A stretch of DNA of 64,000 nt from Macrostomum lignano. Taxonomy: Eukaryota. A program made the translations under genes and the position numbers. The stretch is taken from NCBI GenBank assembly GCA_002269645.1, contig NIVC01002017.1:62001-126000 (forward strand), given 5' to 3'. This document shows positions 9,580 to 60,893 of this stretch, in pieces. Numbering within the stretch: the first letter of the stretch is position 1; each line of letters starts with the position of its first letter. The notes beneath the pieces were generated by a model. The model saw only the letters and a program-made list of their open reading frames with translations, was not told the origin of the DNA and made no database searches.

Positions 9580-11606
<2,027 letters not shown>

Positions 11607-15851: not shown

Positions 15852-15899
15852 TGTTGGGCTGTGGTTGCTGCAATTGTTATCAAATTGGGAATTTACCCA

Positions 15900-18599: not shown

Positions 18600-18679
18600 T
18601 GGAATTTTTTGTTTCTGGGATTAGTGCCAAAGTATTTGGGATTCGGACGGTTGGGATCTGGGCTTATTGTGTCATATCC

Positions 18680-21559: not shown

Positions 21560-27103
<5,544 letters not shown>

Positions 27104-28921: not shown

Positions 28922-29805
28922 TGTTGGGCTGTGGTTGCATCAATTGTTATCAAATTGGGAATTTACCCAGCAATCAAGACTCTCTCCTTAGCAACGCAGA
29001 TTCTACCTTAGCAACCAAGACTCTCGCCTTAACAACGCATATTCTATATTAGCAACTCTCTTTAGCAACGCAGATTCTACCTTAGCAACCGAGACTCTCT
29101 CCTTAATAACGCATATTCTACATTAGCAACTCTCTTTAGCAACGCAGATTCTACCATAGCAACCGAGACTCTCTCCTTAATAACGCATATTCTACATTAG
29201 CAACTCTCTTTAGCAACGCAGATACTACCATAGCAACCGAGACTCTCTCCCTAGCAACGCATATTCTACCTTAACAACCAAGACTCTCTCCGTAGCAACG
29301 CAGAATTTTCCTTACAAACAATATTTGCTACATCAGCAAGCAATACAAAACCCTGGGAACTTGGACCCTACCTAGGAAACAACTTATATCGATAGACCTC
29401 ACATTAGCAAGCCCGAAATTCCAAATAGAGCCAAAAAAGAAACAAAACAGAAAAATTACTCACTGATAATAGATCGGTCAGAAAGGTTTGTTAAAGTCTG
29501 ACTTAGATAAAATTTAAATTAAACCAGTCAAAAACTTGCGCATCAAAAAGTTCTCCCAGTAAAGTGTACAATTCGCAAAGGGGTGAGGTAACGAAAAAAA
29601 TGATTGAATTGCAGGACGTCATTGACAACCGTTAAGAAATTAACAATGCAAAAACATTACTACTTTTTTGTCTAAATTTAAGTAGTAACAACGAATGTTT
29701 CTTGTGGAAAAAAAATCGCTAAAATATGCTAAAATGCAATGCAGTTAAGCATTTGCAGAATAATATTTTCCACTATTCACTAAAACTAGAAGACAGAACT
29801 GCTGC

Positions 29806-30775
29806 CTACTCTTCAACAGGCGGAGACCTGTGCGAATACCAGGACAGGAACACGTCCCACACGGCGGCCAGGCCTGTCACAAAGAACAGCCGCAGCCTAG
29901 TTGGCAGCCAATAGAAATTCACGGCCTGAGCGGCCGGCCACACGCAGGCTTCGACAGCCAGGGCGGTGGGAAATTTATCCCGACAGTAATACAGGCTGTC
30001 GCGCCAGGACCGGCCTTCCATCAGAGGCAGGGCGGTGAAGAAGGCCAGGTTGAAGCAGACGCCAAACACCGCCTGGTCCAGCAGAATCTGCAGTGAAGAG
30101 GGTGGCGGGGAGCCTGAGGAATCAGGGAGGGACATATCGGGGAGCCTGAGGAATCAGGAAGGGGACATAGCGGGGAGCCTGAGGAATCAGGGAGGGGACA
30201 TAGCGGGGAGCCTGAGGAATCAGGGAGGGGACATAGCGGGGAGCCTGAGGAATCAGGGAGGGGACATAGCGGGGAGCCTGAGGAATCAGGGAGGGGACAT
30301 AGCGGGGAGCCTGAGGAATCAGGGAGGGGACATAGCGGGGAGCCTGAGGAATCAGGGAGGGGACATAGCGGGGAGCCTGAGGAATCAGGGAGGGGACATA
30401 GCGGGGAGCCTGAGGAATCAGGAAGAACTACGGACAGAAGCCAAACGCTACCTTGGCCAGCATAGTTCCAGGTGTCCGTCCAGGCAACCGCCTGTCCAGC
30501 GTAAGGTACCAATAGTGAGCCGGCACGGCCCCAATCAGGCCAATCAGGCCCAGCCTGCCGGAGCGGCGCCAATCGTGCGCCCTAATGGCGCTGCTACCGC
30601 CAGCCAGAGTTTCAATTCGTTGAGCGGCGCAATCGGCCAGAACGAAGAGGCTGCCAGCTGTGGCGCAGTTCGTTGCTAAGAGGTAACGCGGCGAATAGGC
30701 CGCTGCCAGGAGGCGCTTGGCTGCTAGCTGCCAGGACTGCAATGGTGGGATTGCATTGTTTGAGGTATTTCCCAT
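29806..30775 (-). CDS. MPV17L2: MPV17L2-like gene, copy 2; exons 30775-30452, 30087-29806
   Basis: Translated ORFs identical to copy 1; the intron has two fewer 33-bp units. Confidence 0.85.
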
Positions 30776-31683
30776 TGGAATTTTTTGTTTCTGGGATTAG
30801 TGCCAAAGTATTTGGGATTCGGACGGTTGGGATCTGGGCTTATTGTGTCATATCCATGGGAATTTGGAAGGTTGGAATAGTGGCAGATGGGGATTTGGAA
30901 GGTTGGCGACGACGACGACGACTTTGAATATGCGCGATATAGATGATTAAACTGACGACCGCCGATCATTGCTTACAATTGAAGCTAACAATGTGTCTTT
31001 GTTCGGATATTGGACCAAAATTCTCTTATAAATTGCGACACTTTCTGGATAAACAAACACATCCATAGGGTGTTTAAGTTACTTAATTGCTCTGGGAAAT
31101 TTTTCGTTTATAACAGATATAACCAAACAAACGAGCGCATGGACAAACAACATTTATATAGAGTGGTTCTCTATAAAAATATTTTCTCTGCGAACTTTTT
31201 CGTTTATAACAGCTAGCCTACACCAGCTTCTAGGTCAGGTAAGTCCCCGACTGCTACTGGTACCATATGTAAACCATGCAGTTAATACATGTCTGTTGGT
31301 GGAATGATCGGCGAGTTATAATCGGCCCCCAATAGTTCAGCCTATACTAATTAGGAGTGTGTCTGGACACGTTGCAGTGCAGGATGAAAAACAAGACCTG
31401 CCAAAAGGCGGATGAACTCATGAGTCAACGGCTATCCAGCTAGAGATGATGTCTCAACAACATTAACTGAGGCAGCAAGCTATGGCAAACTATACTGCCG
31501 TCATCTTGACCCACATTACCAAAAAGCTGATGAGGGTTCGAATGATGAGCGCGAAACAGAGATTACGACCACGTTGAGATCTCTGAAGTTCAGTGCGGGG
31601 CTTTGTTGAGGACTGTGGTGCCCGAAATGCCATTCTCGCTGTTCGATTCCTGAGTGAAAGAGCTATATTGAAATGAAGAAGAA

Positions 31684-32650
31684 TCTGTACGTAGTTGTGT
31701 TTTATGGACTATGCAAAGGCCTTTGATAGTGTCAGACATGAAGAATTGATGAAGATGTTCGAAGAAATTTGACATTGATGGAAAAGACCTTCGAGTTCTT
31801 AGCAATCTGCATTGGAAGCAAAGCGCGGCTATAAAGATTGACTGAACTGACAAAGTTTGCGGTGACTAAGAAAGGTGTCAGGCAAGGCTTTGTCCTCTCT
31901 CCTGGTGTATTCAACCTGTACAGTAAGAAGATTCTGTGAGAGATTGGAGACCTACCAGGACTCGTCATTGGAAGACAGAACTTGACCAAAATGAGATATG
32001 CTGATGAGACAGTGCTCATTACGAAAACGGAAGAGAAGTTGCAAGAAACAGAGTGGTGCGAGCCACTGGAAAGTGAGAAGATGGGTTCAGAAGGCATTGG
32101 TTGCTACCAAACAGAAGCTTCAGTACGCAACATTACCATAAATGGTGAACATGCGAAGCAAGTTTGCAAATGTAACTATTTAGGGAGTTTAATAACTTCG
32201 GGTGGAAAATGTGAACACGGAGAATCAAACGGAGAATCAGCATGGCAAAGGATGCCTTCCATGCAGCAGATGAAAAAATCCAGACAAATGGGTAAGTCGA
32301 AGAAGTTAAGAATTCTTGTCTGCTGTCTCCCTGTTCTCACACATGGGTCGGAGTGCTCAACAATAACACCGGCAATGGAGAAAAGAATCGAGGAAGAGGA
32401 ATTGTGGTTCTCGAGGTGAATTCTCAAAGTGAGCTGGGTCAGTCACAGAGAATGAAGATGTTCTGCTGGTTGTAGAAGGAAGTTGATAGCGAAAATTCGG
32501 AGATGGTAGAGTAGATGGAGTTCTTTGGCCATATTATGAGAAAGGGAGGAATGGAAGATTAAAGGAAGCTGGAGATCGTGGAAGACAGGCAGCAAGCTTT
32601 CTAAAGAACCTGTCTCAATGAATGAACATGAACAGCTTGGAAATGACTTC
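31684..32650 (+). mobile_element. Degenerate RTE fragment, copy 2, uninterrupted (LINE empty site)
   Basis: Same sequence as 21560-22413 joined directly to the sequence that follows 27209. Confidence 0.8.
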
Positions 32651-36292: not shown

Positions 36293-39200
36293 CTAGTCCT
36301 CGTACTCAGTCGTGCTGGTATAGGTCTCCATGCGAGTGATGTACACGCTACCGTCAGCCTCCTTCTTGCACTGGCACTTCTTCACCGATCCGTGCACCTT
36401 ACAGCTGAAATCGGTGCCGGAGCTGGACGCCCTCACGCATTTGCCATTGGTACTCAGGCAGTCGGAGCGGTAGGGTCGGCTGGAGCTCGGGTCCTTGCTG
36501 CACTTAAAGTGGAAGCACATGCTGTCGGCCTTGCTCACCCAGGACTGTCCGGGCTTGTACTTGTGGCTAGTGTAGGGATCAATGCAGTAGTGCTCAATGT
36601 GTGACGTTGTCTCCCAGTGGCCATGGTCAGAGTCACCACTGGTCTCTGAGCTGGTGCTTGTGCTGGTGCTGGTGTGTGTGCTGGTGCTAGAATCCGTGGT
36701 TGTCTCATCGGTGCCAGAGCTCGAGCTGCCACCATGAGGGCGAACAAGTCCCGTGCCAACGCACGAGTAGGTGCGAACGAATCGGCAGCCGCAGCCTACA
36801 ATTGGTTAGCCAAGACTATTCACTATTCATAGTGCTAGAATGGAAACTTATAAAGCTATTACAAGTAAAATGTATAACCATACTACATGTAGCTCTGCAG
36901 GAAGACACAAAGATTCCAATTAGCGTGACTTACGGCCAGACATTACTCGAGACAGCTCTCTGGCGTTGCGAGGCAGAACTCCGAAGCTGAAGCGTCCAGC
37001 AACCGCGCCCTGATGAACGACATCACCTGGATTGTAAAGAAGCAATAGTCAACGCATGGCCACTAACAAATAACGAAAATCAATCGGCAATATCGATAAT
37101 TATACAGTACGTACTTTTGACGCCAATTTCATTCCGAGTTTGGAGAAGCGACCTCGAGTCTTCCGGGCGATGGCTTTGTACGCGCCGCCACTATGTCCGC
37201 ACAGATTTCCGGAGGCGATGATGAAGAAGCGGATGTTCTTGGAAGCCAGCAATTTGGCCACAGATTTGTGCATGCGCGAGTCCTTGGCGGAGGCGTCGGT
37301 GAACAGGAACAGGACCGAGTTTCGGTCGGCGGCAGCAGCGGCATCGCGAACTCCATGCATAGACATCTCAGGACAGTCGCCACCCCCGTGAGGACGGACG
37401 CGTCTCAGGAACGCGAGTGCCTGGTGGGCGTTCCTTGTCTTGAGCACGTTCCGTTTGTAGGGATCTCCGTACGTACCAAGAACGTAGTTATTGAAGCGCT
37501 TGTTCGCCCTGATGATGCTTTGAATGTGGTTCCTGACGGCTTTGATGACGCGGCCCATGCTGCCGGTGTCATCGACAACGAAGATCAGCGATCCTCGCTT
37601 TCCAGGTCGGGGAGCAACAGGCTTGCATGAGCAGACCTTCTTCTTGGTGGAGATCCTGCGGCCACCTCGAGGGCAGCGCTTAGGTTTGGGACGGACTGGT
37701 GGTCGGACAGGTGGGCGGACGGGAGGCCGAACCCCTCCGGTTCCAACGCACTTGTGAGTACGGACAAAGCGGCATCCGCATCCTGAAGAGAAAAAAGTCT
37801 AAGATGGAACTAGATGGCTTAAGCTTTCCTTAAATCTCGGGTCAAGAAAACTCGTTTTAGGGATGGGTAGACGCTAGGCTGACAAGTGTACCCCGAAGAG
37901 TTACTAAATAATAGAAATAGCTACACTATGCTACATGTATATACATTTATCGTTTGGGCTTTAATGGGAACATTGAGGGGTTAAGCTACGATACTGCTTT
38001 ACCAGTAGGGTTGAGGCCGAATTATCTTAAAAATTGCCAACAGATACACGACCAGCTAACACAATTCGGGCAGCCAAGCAAAATATCCTGGAAATCTTGA
38101 AAAGAGAGATGATCGATGATCACTTACGGCCAGACATCACTCGAGACAGCTCTCTGGCGTTGCGAGGCAGAACTCCGAAGCTGAAGCGTCCAGCAACCGC
38201 GCCCCTGATGAACGACATCACCTGGATTGTAAAGAAGCAATAGTCAACGCATGGCCACTAACAAATAACGAAAATCAATCGGCAATATCGATAATTATAC
38301 AGTACGTACTTTTGACGCCAATTTCATTCCGAGTTTGGAGAAGCGACCTCGAGTCTTCCGGGCGATGGCTTTGTACGCGCCGCCACTATGTCCGCACAGA
38401 TTTCCGGAGGCGATGATGAAGAAGCGGATGTTCTTGGAAGCCAGCAATTTGGCCACAGATTTGTGCATGCGCGAGTCCTTGGCGGAGGCGTCGGTGAACA
38501 GGAACAGGACCGAGTTTCGGTCGGCGGCAGCAGCGGCATCGCGAACTCCATGCATAGACATCTCAGGACAGTCGCCACCCCCGTGAGGACGGACGCGTCT
38601 CAGGAACGCGAGTGCCTGGTGGGCGTTCCTTGTCTTGAGCACGTTACGCTTGTAGGGATCTCCGTACGTACCAAGAACGTAGTTATTGAAGCGCTTGTTA
38701 GCCCTGATGATGCCTTGAATGTGGTTCCTGACGGCTTTGATGACGCGGCCCATGCTGCCGGTGTCATCGACAACGAAGATCAGCGATCCTCGCTTTCCAG
38801 GTCGGGGAGCAACAGGCTTGCATGAGCAGACCTTCTTCTTGGTGGAGATCCTGCGGCCACCTCGAGGGCAGCGCTTAGGTTTGGGACGGACTGGTGGTCG
38901 GACAGGTGGGCGGACGGGAGGCCGAACCCCTCCGGTTCCAACGCACTTGTGAGTACGGACAAAGCGGCATCCGCATCCTGAAGAGAAAAAAGTCTAAGAT
39001 GGAACTAGATGGCTTAAGCTTTCCTTAAATCTCGGGTCAAGAAAACTCGTTTTAGGGATGGGTAGACGCTAGGCTGACAAGTGTACCCCGAAGAGTTACT
39101 AAATAATAGAAATAGCTACACTATGCTACATGTATATACATTTATCGTTTGGGCTTTAATGGGAACATTGAGGGGTTAAGCTACGATACTGCTTTACCAG

Positions 39201-42200
39201 TAGGGTTGAGGCCGAATTATCTTAAAAATTGCCAACAGATACACGACCAGCTAACACAATTCGGGCAGCCAAGCAAAATATCCTGGAAATCTTGAAAAGA
39301 GAGATGATCGATGATCACTTACGGCCAGACATCACTCGAGACAGCTCTCTGGCGTTGCGAGGCAGAACTCCGAAGCTGAAGCGTCCAGCAACCGCGCCCT
39401 TGATGAACGACATCACCTGGATTGTAAAGAAGCAATAGTCAACGCATGGCCACTAACAAATAACGAAAATCAATCGGCAATATCGATAATTATACAGTAC
39501 GTACTTTTGACGCCAATTTCATTCCGAGTTTGGAGAAGCGACCTCGAGTCTTCCGGGCGATGGCTTTGTACGCGCCGCCACTATGTCCGCACAGATTTCC
39601 GGAGGCGATGATGAAGAAGCGGATGTTCTTGGAAGCCAGCAATTTGGCCACAGATTTGTGCATGCGCGAGTCCTTGGCGGAGGCGTCGGTGAACAGGAAC
39701 AGGACCGAGTTTCGGTCGGCGGCAGCAGCGGCATCGCGAACTCCATGCATAGACATCTCAGGACAGTCGCCACCCCCGTGAGGACGGACGCGTCTCAGGA
39801 ACGCGAGTGCCTGGTGGGCGTTCCTTGTCTTGAGCACGTTCCGTTGTAGGGATCTCCGTACGTACCAAGAACGTAGTTATTGAAGCGCTTGTTCGCCCTG
39901 ATGATGCTTTGAATGTGGTTCCTGACGGCTTTGATGACGCGGCCCATGCTGCCGGTGTCATCGACAACGAAGATCAGCGATCCTCGCTTTCCAGGTCGGG
40001 GAGCAACAGGCTTGCATGAGCAGACCTTCTTCTTGGTGGAGATCCTGCGGCCACCTCGAGGGCAGCGCTTAGGTTTGGGACGGACTGGTGGTCGGACAGG
40101 TGGGCGGACGGGAGGCCGAACCCCTCCGGTTCCAACGCACTTGTGAGTACGGACAAAGCGGCATCCGCATCCTGAAGAGAAAAAAGTCTAAGATGGAACT
40201 AGATGGCTTAAGCTTTCCTTAAATCTCGGGTCAAGAAAACTCGTTTTAGGGATGGGTAGACGCTAGGCTGACAAGTGTACCCCGAAGAGTTACTAAATAA
40301 TAGAAATAGCTACACTATGCTACATGTATATACATTTATCTTTGGCTTTAATGGGAACATTGAGGGGTTAAGCTACGATACTGCTTTACCAGTAGGGTTG
40401 AGGCCGAATTATCTTAAAAATTGCCAACAGATACACGACCAGCTAACACAATTCGGGCAGCCAAGCAAAATATCCTGGAAATCTTGAAAAGAGAGATGAT
40501 CGATGATCACTTACGGCCAGACATCACTCGAGACAGCTCTCTGGCGTTGCGAGGCAGAACTCCGAAGCTGAAGCGTCCAGCAACCGCGCCCTTGATGAAC
40601 GACATCACCTGGATTGTAAAGAAGCAATAGTCAACGCATGGCCACTAACAAATAACGAAAATCAATCGGCAATATCGATAATTATACAGTACGTACTTTT
40701 GACGCCAATTTCATTCCGAGTTTGGAGAAGCGACCTCGAGTCTTCCGGGCGATGGCTTTGTACGCGCCGCCACTATGTCCGCACAGATTTCCGGAGGCGA
40801 TGATGAAGAAGCGGATGTTCTTGGAAGCCAGCAATTTGGCCACAGATTTGTGCATGCGCGAGTCCTTGGCGGAGGCGTCGGTGAACAGGAACAGGACCGA
40901 GTTTCGGTCGGCGGCAGCAGCGGCATCGCGAACTCCATGCATAGACATCTCAGGACAGTCGCCACCCCCGTGAGGACGGACGCGTCTCAGGAACGCGAGT
41001 GCCTGGTGGGCGTTCCTTGTCTTGAGCACGTTCCGTTGTAGGGATCTCCGTACGTACCAAGAACGTAGTTATTGAAGCGCTTGTTCGCCCTGATGATGCT
41101 TGAATGTGGTTCCTGACGGCTTTGATGACGCGGCCCATGCTGCCGGTGTCATCGACAACGAAGATCAGCGATCCTCGCTTTCCAGGTCGGGGAGCAACAG
41201 GCTTGCATGAGCAGACCTTCTTCTTGGTGGAGATCCTGCGGCCACCTCGAGGGCAGCGCTTAGGTTTGGGACGGACTGGTGGTCGGACAGGTGGGCGGAC
41301 GGGAGGCCGAACCCCTCCGGTTCCAACGCACTTGTGAGTACGGACAAAGCGGCATCCGCATCCTGAAGAGAAAAAAGTCTAAGATGGAACTAGATGGCTT
41401 AAGCTTTCCTTAAATCTCGGGTCAAGAAAACTCGTTTTAGGGATGGGTAGACGCTAGGCTGACAAGTGTACCCCGAAGAGTTACTAAATAATAGAAATAG
41501 CTACACTATGCTACATGTATATACATTTATCTTTTGAGCTTTAATGGGAACATTGAGGGGTTAAGCTACGATACTGCTTTACCAGTAGGGTTGAGGCCGA
41601 ATTATCTTAAAAATTGCCAACAGATACACGACCAGCTAACACAATTCGGGCAGCCAAGCAAAATATCCTGGAAATCTTGAAAAGAGAGATGATCGATGAT
41701 CACTTACGGCCAGACATCACTCGAGACAGCTCTCTGGCGTTGCGAGGCAGAACTCCGAAGCTGAAGCGTCCAGCAACCGCGCCCTTGATGAACGACATCA
41801 CCTGGATTGTAAAGAAGCAATAGTCAACGCATGGCCACTAACAAATAACGAAAATCAATCGGCAATATCGATAATTATACAGTACGTACTTTTGACGCCA
41901 ATTTCATTCCGAGTTTGGAGAAGCGACCTCGAGTCTTCCGGGCGATGGCTTTGTACGCGCCGCCACTATGTCCGCACAGATTTCCGGAGGCGATGATGAA
42001 GAAGCGGATGTTCTTGGAAGCCAGCAATTTGGCCACAGATTTGTGCATGCGCGAGTCCTTGGCGGAGGCGTCGGTGAACAGGAACAGGACCGAGTTTCGG
42101 TCGGCGGCAGCAGCGGCATCGCGAACTCCATGCATAGACATCTCAGGACAGTCGCCACCCCCGTGAGGACGGACGCGTCTCAGGAACGCGAGTGCCTGGT

Positions 42201-45200
42201 GGGCGTTCCTTGTCTTGAGCACGTTCCGTTGTAGGGATCTCCGTACGTACCAAGAACGTAGTTATTGAAGCGCTTGTTCGCCCTGATGATGCTTTGAATG
42301 TGGTTCCTGACGGCTTTGATAACGCGGCCCATGCTGCCGGTGTCATCGACAACGAAGATCAGCGATCCTCGCTTTCCAGGTCGGGGAGCAACAGGCTTGC
42401 ATGAGCAGACCTTCTTCTTGGTGGAGATCCTGCGGCCACCTCGAGGGCAGCGCTTAGGTTTGGGACGGACTGGTGGTCGGACAGGTGGGCGGACGGGAGG
42501 CCGAACCCCTCCGGTTCCAACGCACTTGTGAGTACGGACAAAGCGGCATCCGCATCCTGAAGAGAAAAAAGTCTAAGATGGAACTAGATGGCTTAAGCTT
42601 TCCTTAAATCTCGGGTCAAGAAAACTCGTTTTAGGGATGGGTAGACGCTAGGCTGACAAGTGTACCCCGAAGAGTTACTAAATAATAGAAATAGCTACAC
42701 TATGCTACATGTATATACATTTATCTTTTGAGCTTTAATGGGAACATTGAGGGGTTAAGCTACGATACTGCTTTACCAGTAGGGTTGAGGCCGAATTATC
42801 TTAAAAATTGCCAACAGATACACGACCAGCTAACACAATTCGGGCAGCCAAGCAAAATATCCTGGAAATCTTGAAAAGAGAGATGATCGATGATCACTTA
42901 CGGCCAGACATCACTCGAGACAGCTCTCTGGCGTTGCGAGGCAGAACTCCGAAGCTGAAGCGTCCAGCAACCGCGCCCCTGATGAATGACATCACCTGGA
43001 TTGTAAAGAAGCAATAGTCAACGCATGGCCACTAACAAATAACGAAAATCAATCGGCAATATCGATAATTATACAGTACGTACTTTTGACGCCAATTTCA
43101 TTCCGAGTTTGGAGAAGCGACCTCGAGTCCTCGTGGCGAGAGATTTGTACACATTTCCCGGTCGGCCGCACAGATTTCCAGAAGCAACAGTGAAGAAGCG
43201 GATGTTCTTGGAAGACAGCAGGCTGGCGACAGAGCTCTGCAAGTGGGCGTCCTTGGCGGAGGCATCGGTGAACAGGAACAGGACCGAGTTTCGGTCGGCG
43301 GCAGCAGCGGCATCGCGAACTCCTTGCAGAGCCATCTCAGGACAGTCGCCACCCCCGTGAGGACGGACGCGTCTCAGGAACGCGAGTGCCTGGTGGGCGT
43401 TCCTTGTCTTGAGCACGTTCCGCCTGTAGGGATCTCCGTACGTACCAAGAACGTAGTTATTGAAGCGCTTGTTCGCCCTGATGATGCTTTGAATGTGGTT
43501 CCTGACGGCTGTGATGACGCGGCCCATGCTGCCGGTGTCATCGACAACGAAGATCAGCGATCCTCGCTTTCCAGGTCGGGGAGCTACCGGCTTGCATGAG
43601 CAGACCTTCTTCTTGATGGAGATCCTGCGACCACCTCGAGGGCAGCGCTTAGGTTTGGGACGGACTGGTGGTCGGACAGGCGGTCGGACAGGTGGGCGGA
43701 CAGGCGGTCCACCGGATGGAATGCAATTGCGAATTTTGACGAATCGGCAACCGCATCCTACAACGCCAGTTTTAAATGTTTATGGTTATGTTGGATAGAC
43801 AATATTTGACTGCTCTAACTTGACAACGGAGCATTTGACTGCCAGACATTGACAGGCATGGCACAAACTATAAACTGCCAATCCATAACCAAATCACTAA
43901 CTGAAAGCTGATTTTGCCTACAGTCAGACGGCCAGGAGTGAAATTTCTTGGTAGTCAAATGTCGCGCTCCTGGTTATGTTTTTTCTGTTATGTGGATATT
44001 TTCAATACATGTATTTAAAAAGGGAGCACGAGAATTTCCCACAGGAAGTTTTCCCGCCGAGGTTTTCCCCCGAGAGTTTTCCCGCCGAGGTTTTCCGCAG
44101 GGTTTTTCCTGTCGGAATTTCAAGTCAAATCCAGTCAATAGACAATGCTGGACTAGATTAAAACCAACCTAGACTAGACTTGACTAGACTAGACTAGACT
44201 AGACTGGACTAGACTAGACTAGACTGGACTAGACTAGACTAGACTGGACTAGACTAGACTGGACTGGACTAGACTAGACTAGACTGGATTAGACTAGACT
44301 GGACTAGACTAGACTGGACTAGACTAGACTAGACTGGATTAGACTAGACTGGACTAGACTGGACTGGACTAGACTGGACTGGACTAGACTAGACTAGACT
44401 GGACTAGACTGGACTAGACTAGACTAGACTGGACTAGACTGGACTAGACATAAACTAGACCAGATGAAAAACTAGACTATATTAGAACTAGACTAGACTA
44501 AATTTCAAATCCGATTAGATTTGACTTGAAATTCCGACAGGAAAAACCCTGCGGGAAAACCTCGGCAGGAAAAAATCTCGCGGAAAACCTCCTGCGGGAA
44601 ATTCTCATAGTAGAACCTCTTAAAATATGCTCCTTAACGGGAGGGAATTGGAATGTTTATAAAATTTTTTTCGGTTAGGCTAGTGTGGCCAAGAGCAGCA
44701 GCGTTGGGCATCATTTACTTAACAAAAATTTTTGCTGAAAAGGTGGTTTTTGAGCTAACTTTTTGCTATCGTTAATAATAGCAAATAGTGCAGCTATAAT
44801 TGGACTATTTCATATGCACACAGGATTTTGTGGTTTTCAAACCATGGTTGTAAAGAAATGAGTTTTGAAAAATCATTCCAAAGGACTGAATAAATTTTGA
44901 TTCGACCACTGAGCTGTATTGAATTGCATGTTAATATTAACAAAAAAGTAGCCGGACAACTTCTTTCTGGCGATTAAAAGGTGATAATTACAATATGAGT
45001 AATATTAGTATCAGATATTTAAATTTCTTGAACTACCTTTACGAGAGTAACTTTTCTAAGAAACTTACTTCTTTCAAACGTATAAAAACTAGTCGTTACA
45101 ACTTTTTTGCCAGTTAAAGTAAACTTATTGCTATTAAATACCTACTAACTGTAAACTGACTTTGCACAGCATTGAAAGGCAGAAATAAATCGACTAAATT

Positions 45201-48130
45201 TTAACTGTTCATACACTTTTAGAAGCATTTGCTCAGGTTAATAAGCACTGTGACAGAAAGGTTTCAGTACCCAGGAAAAATCTACTCACGGCCAGACATC
45301 ACTCGAGACAGCTCTCTGGCGTTGCGAGGCAGAACTCCGAAGCTGAAGCGTCCAGCAACCGCGCCCTTGATGAACGACATCACCTGGATTGTAAAGAAGC
45401 AATAGTCAACGTATGGCCACTAACAAATAACGAAAATCAATCGGCAATATCGATAATTATACAGTACGTACTTTTGACGCCAATTTCATTCCGAGTTTGG
45501 AGAAGCGACCTCGAGTCCTCGTGGCGAGAGATTTGTACACATTTCCCGGTCGGCCGCACAGATTTCCAGAAGCAACAGTGAAGAAGCGGATGTTCTTGGA
45601 AGACAGCAGGCTGGCGACAGAGCTCTGCAAGTGGGCGTCCTTGGCGGAGGCATCGGTGAACAGGAACAGGACCGAGTTGCGGTCGGCGGCAGCAGCGGCA
45701 TCGCGAACTCCTTGCAGAGCCATCTCAGGACAGTCGCCACCCCCGTGAGGACGGACGCGTCTCAGGAACGCGAGTGCCTGGTGGGCGTTCCTTGTCTTGA
45801 GCACGTTCCGCCTGTAGGGATCTCCGTACGTACCAAGAACGTAGTTATTGAAGCGCTTGTTCGCCCTGATGATGCTTTGAATGTGGTTCCTGACGGCTGT
45901 GATCACGCGGCCCATGCTGCCGGTGTCATCGACAACGAAGATCAGCGATCCTCGCTTTCCAGGTCGGGGAGCAACAGGCTTGCATGAGCAGACCTTTCGC
46001 CTTCGGAAGCTGACCCTTTCGCCTCTTCGGCATCCTAAAGTAGCATTTAATTTGGCGAAAACATGTAGATTTGCATTATACAAATTTTAATATCTATCGC
46101 AGAAGGATCTTACTTCTTGGCGGTTTTGGTTTCTTTCCGCCACCACCTCTGCACTTGTAGTGACGAACCACGCGGCATCCGCAGCCTAAATGGATTGAAA
46201 AATTCAATAAATGAAGAGTCATGCTTGCTTTTAAGCTATAAAACGTAGCTTGTGTAATCGTTCGAAATTAAGAGAAAGAAAAAAATACTTTCAATTCTTT
46301 TACTCACGACCAGACATTACTCGGCGTAGTTCTCCAGCATTTCGAGGAAAGACGCTAAAGCTGTAGTGTCCCGAAACAGCCTTGCGAATGAAGTGCATTA
46401 CCTGCAAATTTTTATCCAAAATAATACAATGTAGCCATGACAGTACACATAATACTCAAAAAAAATCTTTCCCAGCTTAAGAGTTAATGATGCACTAAAT
46501 TTACGGGTTACTGTAAGTTATAGATCAAAACTTACGGATTTGGTATATGCGTTGCCCAACTTAGAAAACCGACCTCGAGTCCTCGTGGCGAGAGATTTGT
46601 ACACATTGCCCGGACGGCCGCACAGATTTCCAGAAGCAACAGTGAAGAAGCGGATGTTCTTGGAAGACAGCAGGCTGGCGACAGAGCTCTGCAAGTGGGC
46701 GTCCTTGGCGGAGGCGTCGGTGAACAGGAACAGGACCGAGTTTCGGTCGGCGGCAGCAGCGGCATCGCGAACTCCTTGCAGAGCCATCTCAGGACAGTCG
46801 CCACCGCCGTGAGGACGGACGCGTCTCAGGAACGCGAGTGCCTGGTGGGCGTTCCTTGTCTTGAGCACGTTCCGCCTGTATGGATCTCCGTAAGTAGCGA
46901 TGACGTAGTTGTTGAAGCGCTTATTCGCCCTGATGATGCTTTGAATGTGGTTCCTGACGGCTGTGATGACGCGGCCCATGCTGCCGGTGTCATCGACAAC
47001 GAATATCAGCGATCCTCGCTTTCCAGGTCGGGGAGCTACCGGCTTGCAGGAGCAGACCCTCTTGCTGGTGGCAACTGGCCTGCCTCCACCGGGGCATCCT
47101 GTGAATTTCAAGCGCAATAATTTTTTCAGTACGAGTATTTGTAGCTGAAACTTAACCAACAAACGAAATGCAACCTGCAAGCTGAACGGGATTAAATGTG
47201 AGTGTCAAATCGCAAAGTCCTCCCTAATCTGCGTAACCCCGCTTGCTTGGTCCGGAGCTCCGGGTGTGTTTGTAGCCCGGTCAATATAGCTATAGCCGTC
47301 CGCTCTTGTATACGCATATGCTGTATCTACGGTGTCTTACAGCAGTTTAGGGTAAGATGCTTTGAAGCCACATTAAGCGTAAGCATAGAAAAAGGACGCG
47401 TCAGCCTCGCAGTCAGCGTCCAAGTCTCCGCTCTCTAAATAATTCTACACGTAGGTTTTCTAAATGACGTAATAGGAGTATTGATTTGCAGGGGTCAGAA
47501 AACTTCTTTTTCTCAAGGGAGAGAAGAGGAAAGGGGAGAAAAGAGCAGAGAGCTGAGAAGAGACACAAACCCCTTCATTTAAGGTGGGTCGCCATCACAA
47601 ACCCGAAAAATCACGACTCCGAAAAGCGCTTTCCAAAAAAGCGGTTTATAATGGGCGTTGCTATTTTATTTTCCAGAGTTATGATATTTCGCGTTTGTGA
47701 TATTTCGGGTTTGCGATATTTCGGGTTTATGATATTGCGGGTTTATGATATTTCGGGTTTATGATATTGCGGGTTTATGATATTTCGGGTTTGTGATATT
47801 TCGGGTCTATGATATTTCGGGTTTGCGATATTTCGGTTTTGTGGTATTTCGGGTCTATGATATTTCGGGTTTGTGATATTTCGGGTCTATGATATTTCGG
47901 GTTTGTGATATTTCGGGTCTATGATATTTCGGGTTTGTGATATTTCGGGTTTGTGATGCCCCCATTTAAGGTGACATGACATTTTTAGCGGCCTTTGCAC
48001 ATGCACAATGGGAACAGCAAACCCCGCGGCGGAGCAAACGTCACCCGGAAAACTTACGCGGCATGCTTCGCCCTTCGCTCACCGCCAGGATGACCAGGGC
48101 AAGCGCCAGAAACTTCAGTAGATGACGCAT
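36293..48130 (-). CDS. Secreted protein with 8 tandem hemicentin/VWA7-type vWA modules, Pro/Arg linkers, a Ser/Thr stalk and a C-terminal VWC/SVWC-like domain (~2180 codons if intact; four units carry 1-nt deletions as assembled)
   Basis: Signal exon 48130-48058 (MRHLLKFLALALVILAVSEG); vWA exons 47098-46536, 46185-46114+46034-45472, 43757-43084, 42556-41890, 41362-40697, 40171-39505, 38977-38310, 37782-37115, each followed by a 94-nt exon (93 nt in the last unit); terminal exon 36795-36293. Motifs LIFVVDDTGSM, GGGDCPEM, FLFTDASAKD; terminal CIDP..YKPGQSW..C..FKC. Confidence 0.88.
44030..44610. mobile_element. Foldback/MITE-like element: ~85-bp imperfect inverted repeats around a (GACTA/GACTG)n microsatellite
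   Basis: GAGAATTTCCC..CCTGTCGGAATTTCAAGTCAAATC (44048-44130) is mirrored by GATTTGACTTGAAATTCCGACAGG..GGGAAATTCTC (44518-44607); pentamer array ~44165-44500. Confidence 0.75.
47586..47962. mobile_element. Small TIR element (Mutator/Foldback-like) with 10-11-bp TSD and an internal 16-bp tandem array
   Basis: Direct repeats CATTTAAGGTG at 47576-47586 and 47963-47973; CATCACAAACCCGAAA versus TTTCGGGTTTGTGATG at the ends; GATATTTCGGGTTTGT array ~47690-47955. Confidence 0.75.

Positions 48131-48458: not shown

Positions 48459-48514
<56 letters not shown>
48459..48514. repeat. (GA)n microsatellite
   Basis: Directly visible. Confidence 0.95.
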
Positions 48515-48518
<4 letters not shown>

Positions 48519-49540
48519 CAGCAGGTAGCTTAAGGTAATCTTCTAGAGAGTCTGGAACAGTTGTGCCTGCTTGCTTGTGAGTTTCAAGAGCCCCGTGGAC
48601 TGTGTAAAATTCCAGATGAAAAATTTCACATCAAACCTGTTTACAGCGTTCTTTCTTTCACTGTTGGTCCTTAGCCTCCAGCAATTCGTGCTCAATTATG
48701 TCAGCTGACACGTGCTCGTGCTCACAGAGGCTGGACAGAAGCCTCGATCTTTATTGCTATATTTTTGTCTACAGCTTGCAGCTTGATTAATGACAGAGTA
48801 TAGAAATGGCAAAGGTAAAGAAATTCGGTTCAAGTAAACAAAAACTGCAAAGCTTGTTTTAACAGTAACCCGACGGATGGCGCCTTTCCACTCAAAACGG
48901 TTCTTTACGCCGTGCAGTCTGTGGGTAAATTGATGTCAACTCTAGCTCACTATTCCAGACGGCTAATTCTGCTGAGCCGAACGATTGACCATAGATATCT
49001 GCGTGGCGCTGCAGTTCAGGACTGATGACCTGCATGGCAGGCCATCCGCTAATTCAGCAGAAGCAAAGACACGGTATTACGCTGTGGTTCAGATAATTAA
49101 ATTTATGAAAGAGAACAGAACCGTTATTAAAGTGAATATTTTTTTACTTTTTACTCAATCTGACAAATAGCAAAAAGTGCCTGCGGTTTCAACAAGAACT
49201 TTAAAAATTCGAATACGAAGATAAACTTTCGGGAATTTACCATGTCAATTACTGAGAACGAAATGCTGCAAGAATCAACATATAGAGTTAATTCAATTGT
49301 GCTATATTCGATTATTTATTTGATTTGCTCGTAATTTATTAGTCAGAAAACGATTTAGCACAATTGAATTTATTTTATTATGTTGAATCTCGCTTTCGTG
49401 TATCTACTTTTTATCAAGCGAGCTACTTTACCTAAAAGAGATTTAAATAACAGAGTATAGCAGAAATTTCAACTCGTTTTCTGCCAGTACCAGAGTTGAC
49501 CATTAGCTGACGCACAGTTGTGCGCAGAAATGAGAGAAAT

Positions 49541-50091
49541 TTAGCGGAACCCACCAGCCTTCGAATACAAAATCCAGCAATTGTGCACTCCCTGAAGTAG
49601 CAGGTGAAAACCTAGGCGGTGAAACCAACGGTAAGTCTTACGACAGGCCAAGTACGGCTGTAGAGAACCATCCAGCCTGTCCACTCCGCCAATGTTCTTG
49701 GAGTAAACAACAGCCGTAATCGGCTTTGTTACCACCTCTTGCTGACCGCCACGTCGAATTCGGGTGATCTCGGCGGTACCAGCAATGCTCCTGGTGTCAA
49801 TGAAGTTAACCGTCTTAACTCCACTCCACTTTGCAGCCAGCTGCCGTAGACAGTCTGGAATCCCGCGATCTTGTCGAACTGTGCCCGTCAGAAATGAGGA
49901 TTTAGACAGCAGGAACTTGCAGGAACCTTTTTCCTCGTTGACGCAGGTGCACTTGCCAACAGCTCTCTTTCAATGTCTTCATTTGTGATCATCTTAAAGC
50001 GTTGGACTCCTCCGTTCTTCTCTTCGTAGAAGTCGAGCAGCTCCGCAGAAATAAAAAACTCCGACGGGTTTTGAGAAGCTCTATTTTCCAT
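49541..50091 (-). mobile_element. piggyBac-like transposase remnant (internally deleted)
   Basis: KPITAVVYSKNIGGVDRLD..Y..RK..RW..LGFHLL...HNCWILY matches the piggyBac C-terminal catalytic block; no intact ORF and no TIRs located. Confidence 0.7.
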
Positions 50092-50405
50092 GTCAATTGA
50101 TTCAGTTTATTAATTGATTGATTTAGCCTCGCAGAATATCTTCACGGCCATATACACATTTTGGGGAGGGTCCCAGGCTGGGCTATGCCCAAGGTTAAAT
50201 ACGACACTACCCCCCAAAAACGTTTCTTTGGCCATGAAATTATTACTCAGTTCGTGTCAAGCAACAGAAATTCTAAAGTACTCGGGCCAATAAATAATTT
50301 ATTGGCCCGGCCAAATAAATTTCTTTCGCATCAAAGAAATGCTTTTCTTAGTCTATGACCGGGCCTAACTGGGTAATAAAAATAATTTTCTTCCCTTTCT
50401 TATTG

Positions 50406-51184: not shown

Positions 51185-52430
51185 TAAAATGGGGGTCAGT
51201 TGACTGCCATTACTCTTAGATTAACTAAGGGGGAGGGTCAGTTGACTCTTCTGACTCTCAGACTAACTAAGGGGGAGGGTCAGTTGACTCTTCTGACTCT
51301 TTGACTAACTAAGGGGGTCAGTTGACTCTTCTGACTCTCAGAGTAACTAAGGGGGTCAGTTGACTCTTCTGACTCTCAGACTAAGTAAGGGGGGGTCAGT
51401 TGACTTCCATCACTCTCAGCCTAATTAACTAAGGATAGATTGATTCTCCTGACTCTCAGAGTAACTAAGGGGGTCAGTTGACTCTTCTGACTCTCAGACT
51501 AACTAAGGGGGTCAGTTGACTCTTCTGACTCTCAGACTAAGTAAGGGGGGGTCAGTTGACTTCCATCACTCTCAGCTTAATTAACTAAGGATAGATTGAT
51601 TCTCCTGACTCTCAGAGTAACTAAGGGGGTCAGTTGACTCTTCTGACTCTCAGACTAACTAAGGGGGTCAGTTGACTCTTCTGACTCTCAGACTAAGTAA
51701 GGGGGGTCAGTTGACTTCCATCACTCTCAGCTTAATTAACTAAGGATAGATTGATTCTCCTGACTCTCAGAGTAACTAAGGGGGTCAGTTGACTCTTCTG
51801 ACTCTCAGACTAACTAAGGGGGTCAGTTGACTTCCATCACTCTCAGCTTAATTAACTAAGGATAGATTGATTCTCCTGACTCTCAGACTAACTAAGGGGG
51901 TCAGTTGACTCTTCTGACTCTCAGACTAACTAAGGGGGTCAGTTGACTTCCATCACTCTCAGCTTAATTAACTAAGGATAGATTGATTCTCCTGACTCTC
52001 AGACTAACTAAGGGGGTCAGTTGACTCTTCTGACTCTCAGACTAAGTAAGGGGGGTCAGTTGACTTCCATCACTCTCAGCTTAATTAACTAAGGATAGAT
52101 TGATTCTCCTGACTCTCAGAGTAACTAAGGGGGTCAGTTGACTCTTCTGACTCTCAGACTAACTAAGGGGGTCAGTTGACTCTTCTGACTCTCAGACTAA
52201 GTAAGGGGGGGGGTCAGTTGACTTCCATCACTCTCAGCTTAATTAACTAAGGATAGATTGATTCTCCTGACTCTCAGAGTAACTAAGGGGGTCAGTTGAC
52301 TCTTCTGACTCTCAGACTAAGTAAGGGGGGTCAGTTGACTTCCATCACTCTCAGCTTAATTAACTAAGGATACGCTCGTAGATTGATTCTCCTGACTCTC
52401 AGAGTAACTAAGGGGGTCAGCTGAACCCCC
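51185..52430. repeat. Higher-order minisatellite of three related ~36-42-bp monomers, just 3' of TMEM104
   Basis: Monomers AACTAAGGGGGTCAGTTGACTCTTCTGACTCTCAGACT, ..GTCAGTTGACTTCCATCACTCTCAGCTTAATT and AACTAAGGATAGATTGATTCTCCTGACTCTCAGAGT recur in ordered blocks. Confidence 0.9.
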
Positions 52431-52468: not shown

Positions 52469-55400
52469 TCAGTTCAATTGCAGCGTCAGAGCCGGCCGCA
52501 AGCCGGACACCCTGGGTCCAGCAGCGGTCACATTGGCCAGTGCAGCATCCTCCATCAGGTGATCGGCCGTGACCAGAGCCATGCACGCCAGTGTCCAGCC
52601 GAGTATAGCAACCAGACAGGCCGGATGACCGAACGGGCTGACGTGAATCGGCGCGTAGCGACTGTCGGCATCGAGTGGCGGCAGCTGCGAGGCGGCCTTC
52701 CTCCTGCTGTAGTGCAGCAGCAGAGCTGGCACAGCGTACTGCAGCAGTGCGCCAGCGTATGAGCCTGTGTAATTCACCAGAGCGTCCACGCTGCTAGTGA
52801 CGAAAGCCAACGCCACAGGCGGCCCGACTGCCAGCAGAGGAAAAGCCGCCTTCTCTACTAGCCAGTGAAACTGCCGACCGTTGCTGCCGCCGCCGGCGCG
52901 CGACCGAATCAAGCCGAACAGAGCTTTCAAATTGCCGCGCAAAGTGATGGCGATGATTGGGAAAGAGGTGCTCAGCGCGAACACGGGGAACAGGGCCAGG
53001 AAATAGCGCACTGGCTGCCACACCTGGGTGAAGAGTTCGTGAGAAAGGAAGCTGGCTCAGTACTCGTAGGCTTATAGAAAATTGTAAATATGTTTTTATA
53101 TTTTACAATGGGTCGCATCATCGAAGACGGTAAAATTGGGCAGATGTGCAACCGACAGCTCAGCCGCAGCTATTTGCGCGGCGCATCTGAAGGCTGCGTA
53201 CGGCTGTTCAGTCCAAGGACTGGGGGCCGCCACATACACCCTCAATTACCCCAGCTAATGCTGGCAGACATTTTACAGCTGGGTGAACTGAAGCAATGCA
53301 GAGTTAAGTGTCTTGCTCAATGACACAAATTGTTCCAGTGGGATCGGGAATCGAACCCCCAACCTTCAACTCGTGAGTCCAACGCTCTAACCACTAGGCC
53401 ACAAATACAAGCCCCTATGAGAAGGGATGAGAAGAAACATGCATAAATCATAAATCTGCGACGCAAACTCCGGACCTCCAAATGGACTGCTCAAACCTGT
53501 TCTATCAGTGGGCTGCTACCCCCATCCTACCTGTTCTATCAGAGGGTGGCTACCCCCATCCTACCTGTTCTATCAGTGGGCTGCTACCCCCATCCTACCT
53601 GTTCTATCAGAGGGTGGCTACCCCCATCCTACCTGTTCTATCAGAGGGTGGCTACCCCCATCCTACCTGTTCTATCAGAGGGTGGCTACCCCCATCCTAC
53701 CTGTTCTATCAGTGGGCTGCTACCCCCATCCTACCTGTTCTATCAGTGGGCTGCTACCCCCATCCTACCTGTTCTATCAGAGGGTGGCTACCCCCATCCT
53801 ACCTGTTCTATCAGTGGGCTGCTACCCCCATCCTACCTGTTCTATCAGAGGGTGGCTACCCCCATCCTACCTGTTCTATCAGTGGATGGCTACCCTATCC
53901 TAATCAGTGGGTTGCTACCCCCAAGTAGCCGGCGAGGTATTCACACGTTCAAAGCAAACGCAAGTTGCTCCCGCCTTTTACCCGGCACAGAAGATCAGTC
54001 AAACTCACCCCAATAGCCAGCCGCCTTCCTGGCTGAAAGTTAAGCGTGTACAAATCTTCCAGATGGCCGAACGCGAATATGCCAGTATAGGCCAGGCTAA
54101 GGTAGAACACTAATATTAGCGAGAAGTCGGCCAGCAGTACCAGACGCAGATGGCGTTTAGGCGACATGGGAGTGAGCAGGGCAGGCAGCGAGTGGTGGCA
54201 CATGAAAGAGTACACGGATGCGCCGAACAGCTGGGGAATTCTTGTCCAATTAACTGGGCCTGAATCAGTTATTGGCGGTTGCGAGGTTGCACTGGTCAAC
54301 GGTGTTGCCAAAAATAGTTCATTATTTTTAAATGTCAGAGGTTCAAGTTAGCCAATGGTTTATACACAGGCAGTAGTACGTGCTACAAGCTGATGCGGAT
54401 AACAAATTAGCAACCATATTTGGCGGTTGAAATTACAACAAATAACAATTTAGCAGGATAGGTATAGGTATAGGTAAGTATAGGTAACAGGATGCTTATA
54501 CTAGAGAATATCTAGATAACAGGGTGTCATTACTAGAGAATATCTAGATAACAGGGTGTCATTACTAGAGAATATCTAGATAACAGGGTGTCATTACTAG
54601 AGAATATCTAGATAACAGGGTGTCATTACTAGATAATATCTAGATAACAGGGTGTCATTACTAGATAATATCTAGATAACAGTGTGTCTATACTAGATAT
54701 GTCTAGATAACAGTGTGCCTATACTAGAGAATATCTAGATAACAGGGTGTCATTACTAGAGAATATCTAGATAACAGGGTGTCATTACTAGAGAATATCT
54801 AGATTACAGGGTGTCATTACTAGAGAATATCTAGATAACAGGGTGTCATTACTAGATAATATCTAGATAACAGTGTGTCTATACTAGATATGTCTAGATA
54901 ACAGTGTTCCTATACTAGAGAATATCTAGATAACAGGGTGTCTATACTAGATAATATCTAGATGGCAGGGTGTCTATACTAGAGAATATCTAGATAACAG
55001 GGTGTCATTACTAGAGAATATCTAGATAACAGGGTGTCATTACTAGAGAATATCTAGATAACAGGGTGTCATTACTAGAGAATATCTAGATAACAGGGTG
55101 TCTATACTAGAGAATATCTAGATAAAAGGGTGCCTATACAAGATAATATCTAGATAACAGGGTGTCTATACTAGAGAATATCTAGATGGCAGGGTGTCTA
55201 TACTAGAGAATATCTAGATAACAGGGTGTCATTACTAGAGAATATCTAGATAACAGGGTGTCTATACTAGAGAATATCTAGATAAAAGGGTGCCTATACA
55301 AGATAATATCTAGATAACAGTGTCTATATTAGAGAATTATGAGAATATCTAGATAACAGGGTGTCTATACTAGATAATATCTAGATGGCAGGGTGTCTAC

Positions 55401-60835: not shown

Positions 60836-60893
60836 ATATTATGCCACACTAAACGAAAACATGGCAAATTCATACCATTGTTTCATGTTTCAG

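Follow-up and report, generated by a model that had tools for sequence, protein, structure and literature searches.

The window examined here, a 64-kb stretch of Macrostomum lignano DNA, carries on its minus strand a 19-exon gene that runs for 11.8 kb from an ATG at 48130 to a stop at 36293, exactly the limits proposed in a first-pass annotation of the sequence. In the spliced gene model, all exon junctions are GT-AG with consistent phases, and there is a single start, a single signal peptide and a single stop. The junctions that connect exons 2, 3, 4 and 5 are those of the UniRef model P0001. As assembled, the frame remains open for 867 codons only; a 2179-aa ORF is recovered once five bases are inserted.

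All features of the gene lie on the minus strand. A TATA box, read directly as TATAAAAG, is located at 48242-48235, ~105 nt upstream of the ATG. Exon 1 (48058..48130) contains the start codon and signal peptide (MRHLLKFLALALVILAVSEGRSMP) and ends in a phase-1 donor, GTAAGT. Its product, MRHLLKFLALALVILAVSEG, is signal-peptide-like by inspection, and the promoter and signal-peptide exon described previously are thus both present. The paralogue P0006 likewise carries its signal peptide on its own first exon. Exon 2 (46536..47098) encodes a CPGGG...CSC cap and vWA unit 1, whose last helix falls on the 94-nt exon 3 (46308..46401). Exon 4 (46114..46185) supplies a CGC...C cap and a Gly/Lys/Pro linker between units 1 and 2. 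Unit 2 spans 45290..46034 (exon 5, 46034-45472; exon 6, 45383-45290), and the region at 42902..43757 (exon 7, 43757-43084; exon 8, 42995-42902) provides a CGC cap, a PVRP spacer, a CP..CSC cap and unit 3. Units 4-8 occupy exons 9-18 (36934..42556), a two-exon cassette present five times. Exon 19 (36293..36795) holds the last CGC...C cap, a Ser/Thr-rich acidic stretch (about 36626-36733) that corresponds to the stalk noted earlier, an 8-Cys tail domain (about 36368-36586) and the TAG stop (36293-36295). The minus-strand orientation, the near-identity of units 4-8 and the five frameshifts had gone unremarked in the first-pass annotation.

The C-terminal tail stands apart from the rest of the protein. 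Searches of Pfam, the PDB and protein databases returned no relatives of the C-terminal 113 aa. With Pfam at E <= 10, we obtained only sub-threshold fn1 and SH2 matches (fn1: E 0.14, 12.8 bits against a 27-bit cut-off, 20 residues) and no SVWC or VWC match, while PDB sequences gave only noise (angiopoietin, E 0.2). A single-sequence AF2 model of the tail reached a pLDDT of 47.5, too poor for a fold search. The tail resembles SVWC, VWC and fibronectin type I modules in its eight Cys and in the C-x-D-x5-Y-x2-G-x2-W start of the first sub-domain, but it differs from them in lacking an SVWC, VWC or PDB match or a homologue. The VWC/SVWC-like end proposed earlier thus has no profile, PDB or homologue support. 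Because the tail has no relatives, the only features that place exon 19 in the mature transcript are its phase, its ORF length and the homologous CGC cap.

vWA units and their Macrostomum relatives

A tblastn search of the 64-kb window with one unit as query identified vWA modules only between 36.7 and 47.1 kb, where exactly eight occur, each on the minus strand. A family HMM also detects eight domains in the protein. Both results agree with the eight hemicentin-type units first described, although the count is provisional. Two units match the Pfam family PF25106 (VWA_4) at 120-123 bits (E about 1e-35; cut-off 27 bits). The motifs originally reported, DDTGSM, GGGDCPEM, TDASAKD, CGC, CSC and (PVRP)n, are all found in the spliced translation. 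Every domain retains a conserved Cys pair as well as the metal-site motif (D-x-T-x-S, GGGDCPE, TDA), and a 26-row family alignment shows no variation at D72, S76, G135, D137, C138, P139, E140, D164 or C196. The product of exon 7 (unit 3) was modeled by AF2 with a pLDDT of 87.4 and a pTM of 0.71. A Foldseek search of the PDB with this model returned the integrin alpha1 I domain, CMG2, ITIH1 and integrin beta I-like domains at probability 1.0, so that the predicted structure confirms a vWA fold (Rossmann-like/integrin I-domain) for the unit.

Small Cys caps bracket each domain, CPxG...CxC ahead of it and CxC...C behind. PVRP spacers follow only units 2-7, which is six of the seven inter-unit linkers; the earlier description of such linkers between units applies to these and fails after unit 1. 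With the frame restored, the intact protein has 2179 aa, a pI of 11.5, a K+R content of 20% and 72 Cys. These values bear out the Lys/Arg-rich composition seen at first reading and, together with the gene model and signal peptide, the proposal of a single secreted chain of hemicentin-type vWA domains that is multivalent, cationic and Cys-containing. Motifs and composition suggest that the units may bind metal and polyanions.

Representative homologues were sought with a single-exon part of a unit. Close relatives comprise only M. lignano proteins and a few environmental or transcriptome fragments, in line with the suggestion that the protein is lineage-specific. A search for chains with at least three such domains had been recommended; 221 of 247 relatives contain a single VWA_4 domain, and eukaryotic relatives reach a maximum of three clear domains, in M. 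lignano paralogues only. The sole model with four matches, P0002, contains a duplicated segment, and one bacterial-looking protein has five to seven VWA_4 domains. The architecture is therefore unusual, as had been claimed. The further claim of a stand-alone undescribed system does not hold: a paralogous family with one to three units is already in UniProt/NCBI, and multi-vWA matrix proteins are classical.

These M. lignano paralogues are recorded as uncharacterised "VWFA domain-containing proteins" and have signal peptides. P0013 has one unit, P0006 two, and P0004 and P0005 three, while P0007 is arranged as VWA_4-LCCL-VWA_4. P0119/PAA86075.1 (4112 aa) combines two units with K/R/Cys-rich repeats and a VWD domain, which gives it a glue-like composition. 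The paralogues share with the window protein the signal peptide, VWA_4 units at 39-47% identity, and the CPxG...CxC and CxC...C inter-unit caps, and several are as basic (pI 11.4-11.7). In contrast, they have at most three units rather than eight and are without the PVRP spacers, the Ser/Thr stretch and the 8-Cys tail. Some paralogues, such as P0004 (pI 6.7), are neutral, so charge is not a defining trait of the family. The window protein has the signal peptide, VWA_4 units and flanking caps that characterize the secreted multi-VWA_4 family of Macrostomum, and sequence comparison places its gene as the largest member of this already recorded, uncharacterised paralogous family. The joining of units in one transcript is predicted by gene models only (P0001, P0004-P0006). 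Our literature and database search returned no cDNA, expression-site, proteomic or functional record for the gene or any paralogue, and the papers searched mention neither the family nor the gene identifiers of the paralogues.

Cassette amplification, unit number and reading frame

The two-exon cassette of units 4-8 repeats with a period of 1191-1195 nt (1.19 kb), and its five copies are about 99-100% identical, introns included. An intact copy contributes 668 + 94 nt, or 254 codons, in phase 1-1. Comparing unit with unit, dN/dS ranges from 0.07 to 0.48, a sign of constraint on the coding sequence, and units 7 and 8 differ by four synonymous changes and one non-synonymous change. We propose that the array expanded by repeated unequal crossing-over of the 1.19-kb phase 1-1 cassette and that the latest rounds would be very recent. 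A homologous exon B-intron-exon A cassette, with 51-57% aa identity, occurs in a metagenome contig from another species (L002). At 1280 nt, it is a circular de Bruijn contig whose ends overlap by 55 nt, and the 723 nt of coding sequence that it carries are in phase. As judged from its sequence, it is the same cassette collapsed from a tandem repeat, which would make the tandem cassette biological.

Five 1-nt deletions interrupt the assembled sequence, near 42229, 41102, 41036, 39844 and 37011, and the frame is lost after codon 867. The first, TACAA-CGG in unit 4 (42228..42230), lies where unit 8 has A and unit 7 has G, and it recurs at about 41036 in unit 5 and at about 39844 in unit 6. The second deletion of unit 5, CATTCAA-GC (41100..41103), affects a position where unit 7 has G and the remaining units have A. 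The deletion in exon 18, ATCA-GGGCG (37010..37013), falls where units 4-6 have A and unit 7 has G; as assembled, it leads to a TAA stop ahead of the last exon. All three deletion positions thus fall on A/G-variable columns, of which there are just seven among 762 exon columns. By our estimate, the probability of this coincidence by chance is about 1e-4 to 1e-5. Deletions at sites that vary between A and G among the units are the signature of a consensus artefact. The five deletions are therefore most likely consensus errors of the assembly, and the gene is probably intact, encoding 2179 aa. In keeping with an artefact, the single-copy gene TMEM104 alongside is unbroken, and older ML2-derived models of the locus, P0118 and P0129, are visibly frame-garbled.

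The frameshifts and the near-identity of five units are what make the count of eight provisional. The gene could be real and the number eight a product of assembly, the near-identical cassette having been expanded or collapsed so that the true number of units differs. We consider this somewhat unlikely, but it deserves serious weight. Identity of about 99-100% across 1.19 kb in units 4-8 would allow it, and the deletions at variable sites point to reads from different units or haplotypes mixed in the consensus. Moreover, the ML2-derived P0129 has a unit order (SMHG-type, then ITAV-type) that is absent from the window. However, unit-specific substitutions separate units 4-8 into at least three variants, one represented by units 4-6 and two more by unit 7 and by unit 8, and the homologous cassette is tandemly repeated in another species too. 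Together with the clearly different units 1-3, these variants give at least six distinguishable units.

Alternatively, the frameshifts are real. The gene would then be decaying or truncated. Its product, of 867 aa, would stop within unit 4 after three and a half vWA units and lack the tail, and units 4-8 would be dead copies amplified after the first lesion. The assembled sequence itself reads this way, and the TACAA-CGG deletion common to units 4-6 is parsimoniously explained as one event followed by duplication. Next door, the single-copy TMEM104 has no frame breaks, indicating that the assembly is not generally poor. Against these points, independent mutations would not be expected to land exactly on variable sites in three of three cases, the differences between units 7 and 8 are mostly synonymous, and every splice site is intact. 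Moreover, every lesion removes 1 nt from a short run of A or G, and the only stretch with ambiguous read placement contains them all. We regard real lesions as unlikely. A search with TMEM104 for an independent copy of the locus outside the assembly gave the UniRef model P0248 only and no contig.

A putative cationic cross-linker and its known counterparts

Taking these observations together, we assign a probability of about 0.6 to the joint reading that the gene encodes one secreted chain of eight VWA_4 domains, intact at ~2180 aa and with a pI of about 11.5, that acts as a multivalent cationic cross-linker. Such a protein would be stored within a glandular secretion or matrix or be discharged together with it. 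The metal site of each domain would be completed by an acidic ligand group, while the basic surface and spacers would bind polyanions, for example acidic or sulphated glycans. A flexible chain bearing eight of these sites could then provide avidity and cohesion.

The same protein might instead serve as a polycationic defence or reproductive secretion (an antimicrobial coating, a seminal-fluid protein or an egg-shell/cement component) and not as part of a cohesive matrix or glue. The protein is predicted to be secreted and has a strong positive charge, its family is rapidly expanding and lineage-specific, and reproductive secretions of M. lignano are reported to be rich in lineage-specific, fast-evolving proteins (PMC5977470, PMC7336406). 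On the other hand, the supplements examined from the seminal-fluid and positional RNA-seq papers (Weber 2018, Arbore 2015) contain no vWA/hemicentin entry for the family. We think this role distinctly improbable, though the present results do not separate it from a cohesive one. It is next to inconceivable that each unit is a gene of its own or that the locus is a gene cluster. Mechanical ORF lists do give each unit its own ATG-started ORF, but these ATGs (MGRVI...) sit past the first β-strand of the domain, and the signal peptide and TATA box occur at exon 1 alone. Every cassette is phase 1-1, its GT-AG sites are conserved and no stop separates one unit from the next; in the databases, the models P0001 and P0004-P0006 place units together on a single chain. 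Splice phases and the absence of signal peptides or promoters at the units thus rule out one gene per unit.

More speculatively, the cross-linker reading can be extended. The multi-VWA_4 proteins, including the eight-unit gene and P0119, could form an undescribed macrostomid-specific class of polycationic, metal-site-bearing structural secretion proteins, a further component of glue, cement, mucus or egg attachment whose valency is tuned rapidly by gain and loss of the phase 1-1 cassette. Such tuning is suggested by the second species, in which the tandem cassette is found collapsed, but we hold the extension as a whole to be doubtful.

If intact and expressed, the gene would encode the first long hemicentin/VWA7-type vWA array in a eukaryotic protein and offer a clear case of an exon cassette amplified very recently. 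We know of no established ligand for vWA domains of this type. M. lignano is amenable to in situ hybridisation, RNAi and transgenesis, its bioadhesion is an active research topic, and an intact, expressed gene would make these tools a practical route to the ligand of VWA_4. Its folded, polycationic, multivalent module might also aid cohesion beside the low-complexity K/R regions of Mlig-ap1. Should the frameshifts prove real, the gene would be an unremarkable case of decay within an expanded family. Either way, the coincidence of deletions with variable sites warns of consensus errors in near-identical tandem repeats.

Secreted proteins with several vWA domains are a classical matrix architecture, seen in collagen VI alpha3, matrilins, AMACO/VWA2, cochlin and the A1-A3 domains of vWF. 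Like the window protein, these are secreted chains of several vWA domains, and they build or cross-link extracellular material, as we predict here. They differ in using PF00092-type domains with collagenous, coiled-coil, EGF or LCCL partners and in being old, conserved genes, whereas the window protein uses VWA_4, is lineage-specific and extremely basic, and is in part only a few substitutions old.

The N-terminal vWA domains of hemicentin-1/-2 and VWA7 belong to the same PF25106 family (E about 1e-35) as the window units and have in common with them the motifs DxTGSM, GGGDCPE and TDAxAKD and the Cys pair. VWA7-like proteins of animals, fungi and bacteria are 30-40% identical to the units. However, hemicentin carries one VWA_4 domain with Ig, EGF and fibulin modules, in contrast to eight VWA_4 domains in a polycationic chain, and Pfam finds no Ig-C2 array, G2F/EGF or fibulin-type C-terminus in the window protein. 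VWA7-like proteins combine one VWA_4 with PF23560, PF25107 and PF23619 modules, all three of which are absent here.

In the adhesive organ of M. lignano, the cohesive protein Mlig-ap1 owes its cohesion to K/R-rich regions, and its positive charge is considered central to function since heparin blocks adhesion (PMC6410801). We found no sequence homology between Mlig-ap1 and the window protein. Its charge resides in low-complexity KR regions beside C-type lectin, vWD-C8-TIL and EGF domains, without VWA_4. Pfam detects no C-type lectin, vWD-C8-TIL core or EGF repeats in the window protein, and VWD occurs in paralogue P0119 only. Because the defining partner domains are absent, we rule out orthology with hemicentin, VWA7 or Mlig-ap1. 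Nevertheless, Mlig-ap1 comes from the same animal and, like the window protein as predicted, is large, secreted and very rich in K/R, and its cohesive function offers a parallel to the cross-linking role proposed here.

Gene model and domain architecture

In the interval 36.3-48.1 kb, all vWA-like reading frames lie on the minus strand. Reading this strand and placing GT-AG introns gave a 19-exon model from an ATG at 48130 to a stop at 36293, exactly the span proposed by the first-pass annotation. Exon 1 (48130-48058) starts with the ATG and encodes MRHLLKFLALALVILAVSEGRSMP, which by inspection has the shape of a classical signal peptide, and the TATA box TATAAAAG (48242-48235, minus strand) is located approximately 105 nt upstream of the ATG. 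Exons 2-6 make up units 1 and 2, whose intervening linker is its own 72-nt exon, and every unit from unit 3 onward follows a two-exon cassette layout. The large cassette exon, of 674 nt in unit 3 and 668 nt in units 4-8 when intact, runs from the preceding unit's C-terminal cap through a spacer and the N-terminal cap into the vWA domain, most of which it encodes, while the 94-nt second exon encodes the domain's last helix. Because each cassette begins and ends in phase 1 and the intact version in units 4-8 spans 254 codons (762 nt), the frame is preserved however many cassettes are present. Exon 19 (36795-36293), which we assign to the gene on the basis of phase, a 166-codon open frame and a homologous CGC cap, encodes this CGC...C cap, 35 Ser/Thr/Asp/Glu-rich residues, an 8-Cys region and a TAG. 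Using one unit as query, tblastn found exactly eight modules, all at this gene and none elsewhere in the window, and the database model P0001 reproduces the exon 2-5 junctions. The gene model is sound, and the original observation is confirmed.

Each unit matches the hemicentin/VWA7-type domain that had been recognized by eye (Pfam PF25106, VWA_4) with a score of 120-123 bits (cut-off 27), and general vWA models match more weakly. The exon-7 product was modelled with AlphaFold2 from a 26-row family alignment, giving a mean pLDDT of 87 and a pTM of 0.71. The model's top PDB matches are integrin alpha1 I domains, CMG2/ANTXR2, ITIH1 and integrin beta I-like domains, each with probability 1.0. The family-invariant residues are D72 and S76 of the DDTGS motif, GGGDCPE, the TD of FTDASAKD and C196. 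They make up a MIDAS-like, putatively metal-binding site and a conserved Cys pair.

Cys spacing in the linker is fixed (CGC-x7-C, spacer, C-P-R-G-G-x10-C-S-C). Paralogues share the caps (CPxGY...C...C before the unit, CxC...C after), but without the PVRP spacer. Each repeat contains eight Cys, an even number that fits fully intramolecular pairing, and disulfide links between molecules are therefore not implied. The Lys/Arg-rich composition was borne out: the conceptual mature protein has a pI of 11.5, 20% K+R, 4.6% D+E and a net charge of about +334. It contains no N-x-S/T sequon.

The VWC/SVWC-like label given to the C-terminal end has a C..Y..G..W start and the Cys count as its only basis, and this identity is unsupported. 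The last 113 residues have no Pfam match at E ≤ 1, and the sole match at E ≤ 10 is a 20-residue stretch of fn1 (E 0.14). No relative was found in the PDB and no homologue in a 5.8-billion-protein collection. A single-sequence model was unusable (pLDDT 47).

Intron 1 contains 17 copies of a 16-nt tandem repeat (47682-47957). The 1.5-kb intron 6, between units 2 and 3, holds (CTAGA)x66 (44169-44500) bordered by short 14-nt repeat arrays (44047-44106 and 44538-44601), a block that may be an inserted element. Some 220 nt upstream of the TATA box there is a (GA)x28 microsatellite (48459-48515); beyond it, a degenerate reading frame (49480-50100) looks transposase-like by eye. Elsewhere in the window, 15158-22413 and 28228-32537 form a segmental duplication (95-99.9% identity) that takes in the 5' part of a pre-PUA/PUA (eIF2D/MCTS-like) gene. 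A LINE (23636-27103) situated between the two copies has an intact 1155-aa ORF encoding endonuclease, reverse transcriptase and RNase H. Ordinary neighbours include genes for an MFS sugar transporter (5022-7083, minus) and a papain-family, cathepsin L-like cysteine protease (Peptidase_C1; 10085-11606, minus). Long satellite-like tandem arrays with 76-91% internal identity occupy 1-1024, 2584-3745, 15891-17079, 51191-52424, 54471-55744 and 59403-61036, and some yield long spurious ORFs of repeated peptides. A 681-aa ORF (61195-63240, plus) has no Pfam match and may derive from a mobile element.

Frame breaks in the near-identical units

Units 4-8 repeat in tandem every 1191-1195 nt and are approximately 99-100% identical to one another, introns included; against them, units 1-3 have exons about 87% identical and different introns. 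The large exons of units 4, 5 and 6 measure 667, 666 and 667 nt rather than 668, and exon 18 measures 93 nt rather than 94. As a result, the assembled frame stays open for 867 codons and is lost within unit 4, a break absent from the first-pass annotation. Five 1-nt deletions at three positions account for the interruptions: TACAA(A)CGG in units 4, 5 and 6, CATTCAA(A)GC in unit 5 and ATCA(G)GGGCG in exon 18. Adding one base at each of the five sites recovers a single ORF of 2179 codons.

We conclude, with a probability of about 0.75-0.8, that these breaks are consensus artefacts of assembly. Substitutions affect just 7 of 762 exon columns among units 4-8, and all three deletion positions coincide with such columns, each an A/G difference between units. 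By our estimate, this would occur by chance with a probability of 1e-4 to 1e-5, given a placement ambiguity of about three columns per deletion. The coincidence points to a mixed-read consensus, from units or haplotypes, at a disputed base and not to independent mutations. A real deletion followed by amplification would be parsimonious, and the presence of the same deletion in three units fits a single event before copying. However, every lesion falls within the sole stretch without unique read placement, and the single-copy neighbour, a three-exon TMEM104 homologue (Aa_trans family; 52469-56796, minus), has no frame breaks when aligned to M. lignano and Owenia homologues. P0118 and P0129, older ML2-derived models of the eight-vWA locus, are visibly frame-garbled. 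The last exon of P0248, an ML2-derived UniRef model of the TMEM104 gene, looks frame-garbled relative to the window. Units 7 and 8 differ by four synonymous changes and one non-synonymous change, and dN/dS is 0.23-0.48 for older unit pairs; the units thus evolved as coding sequence.

By the same reasoning, the number of near-identical units, and with it the count of eight, is provisional. At least three variants within units 4-8 are defined by unit-specific substitutions, so the whole gene has at least six distinguishable units.

Relatives and a second tandem cassette

The top database matches are M. lignano proteins. P0001 and P0118 are fragmentary models of the locus itself (96-97% identity), and the paralogues, at 39-47% identity, are uncharacterised and annotated as 'VWFA domain-containing' or 'hypothetical'. 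These paralogues contain one unit (P0013), two (P0006, pI 11.4), three (P0004 and P0005, pI 6.7 and 8.6) or a VWA_4-LCCL-VWA_4 arrangement (P0007). Another paralogue, P0119 (PAA86075.1; M. lignano, 4112 aa), combines a signal peptide, two VWA_4 units, K/R/Cys-rich repeats spanning >3000 aa (K+R 26%, Cys 8%) and a VWD domain. It is a giant secreted, uncharacterised protein of glue-like composition, distinct from Mlig-ap1 and Mlig-ap2 as described.

A full scan of 1.84 billion representatives returned 1138 matches at E ≤ 1e-3, and almost all of the best 150 have a single domain. According to the family HMM, 221 of 247 collected relatives contain one domain, and no eukaryotic relative among them has more than three clear domains, a number confined to M. 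lignano paralogues. P0002 shows four matches, but a segment is duplicated within it; P0180, a bacterial-looking Logan protein, has five to seven domains. VWA_4 is thus common, arrays are rare, and eight is without precedent in the proteins surveyed.

A 58% identical protein (P0120) is encoded on a 1335-nt ENA metagenome scaffold (ERZ23496033 scaffold_24478), on which an intron separates a homologue of the 94-nt exon from a following linker-plus-vWA exon. Its exons total 723 nt in phase 1-1. The first and last 55 nt are identical, so the scaffold is a circular de Bruijn contig that repeats every 1280 nt. From this layout, the scaffold is probably a collapsed array of identical cassettes, so an array of this kind is apparently present in a second species, where the linker is not basic.

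The earlier interpretation is partly supported. Rather than a new system, the gene represents an extreme case, amplified very recently, within an uncharacterised family of flatworm proteins that is built from a known domain.

Possible function

We found no expression, proteomic or functional record of the protein in the text of the papers searched or in the supplements of two M. lignano screens. Its anatomy, with eight predicted metal-site domains on one secreted chain, proline-rich spacers and a uniformly basic surface, suggests, in the reading we favour, that it could bind several acidic or sulphated partners at once and cross-link them. A role in reproductive or defensive secretions would be equally compatible with the data. 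The fusion of VWA_4 units, K/R/Cys repeats and VWD in P0119 points toward cross-linking and cohesion. The nearest functional precedent comes from the same animal: the K/R-rich regions of Mlig-ap1, the cohesive protein of the adhesive organ, provide cohesion, and heparin neutralises them (PMC6410801).
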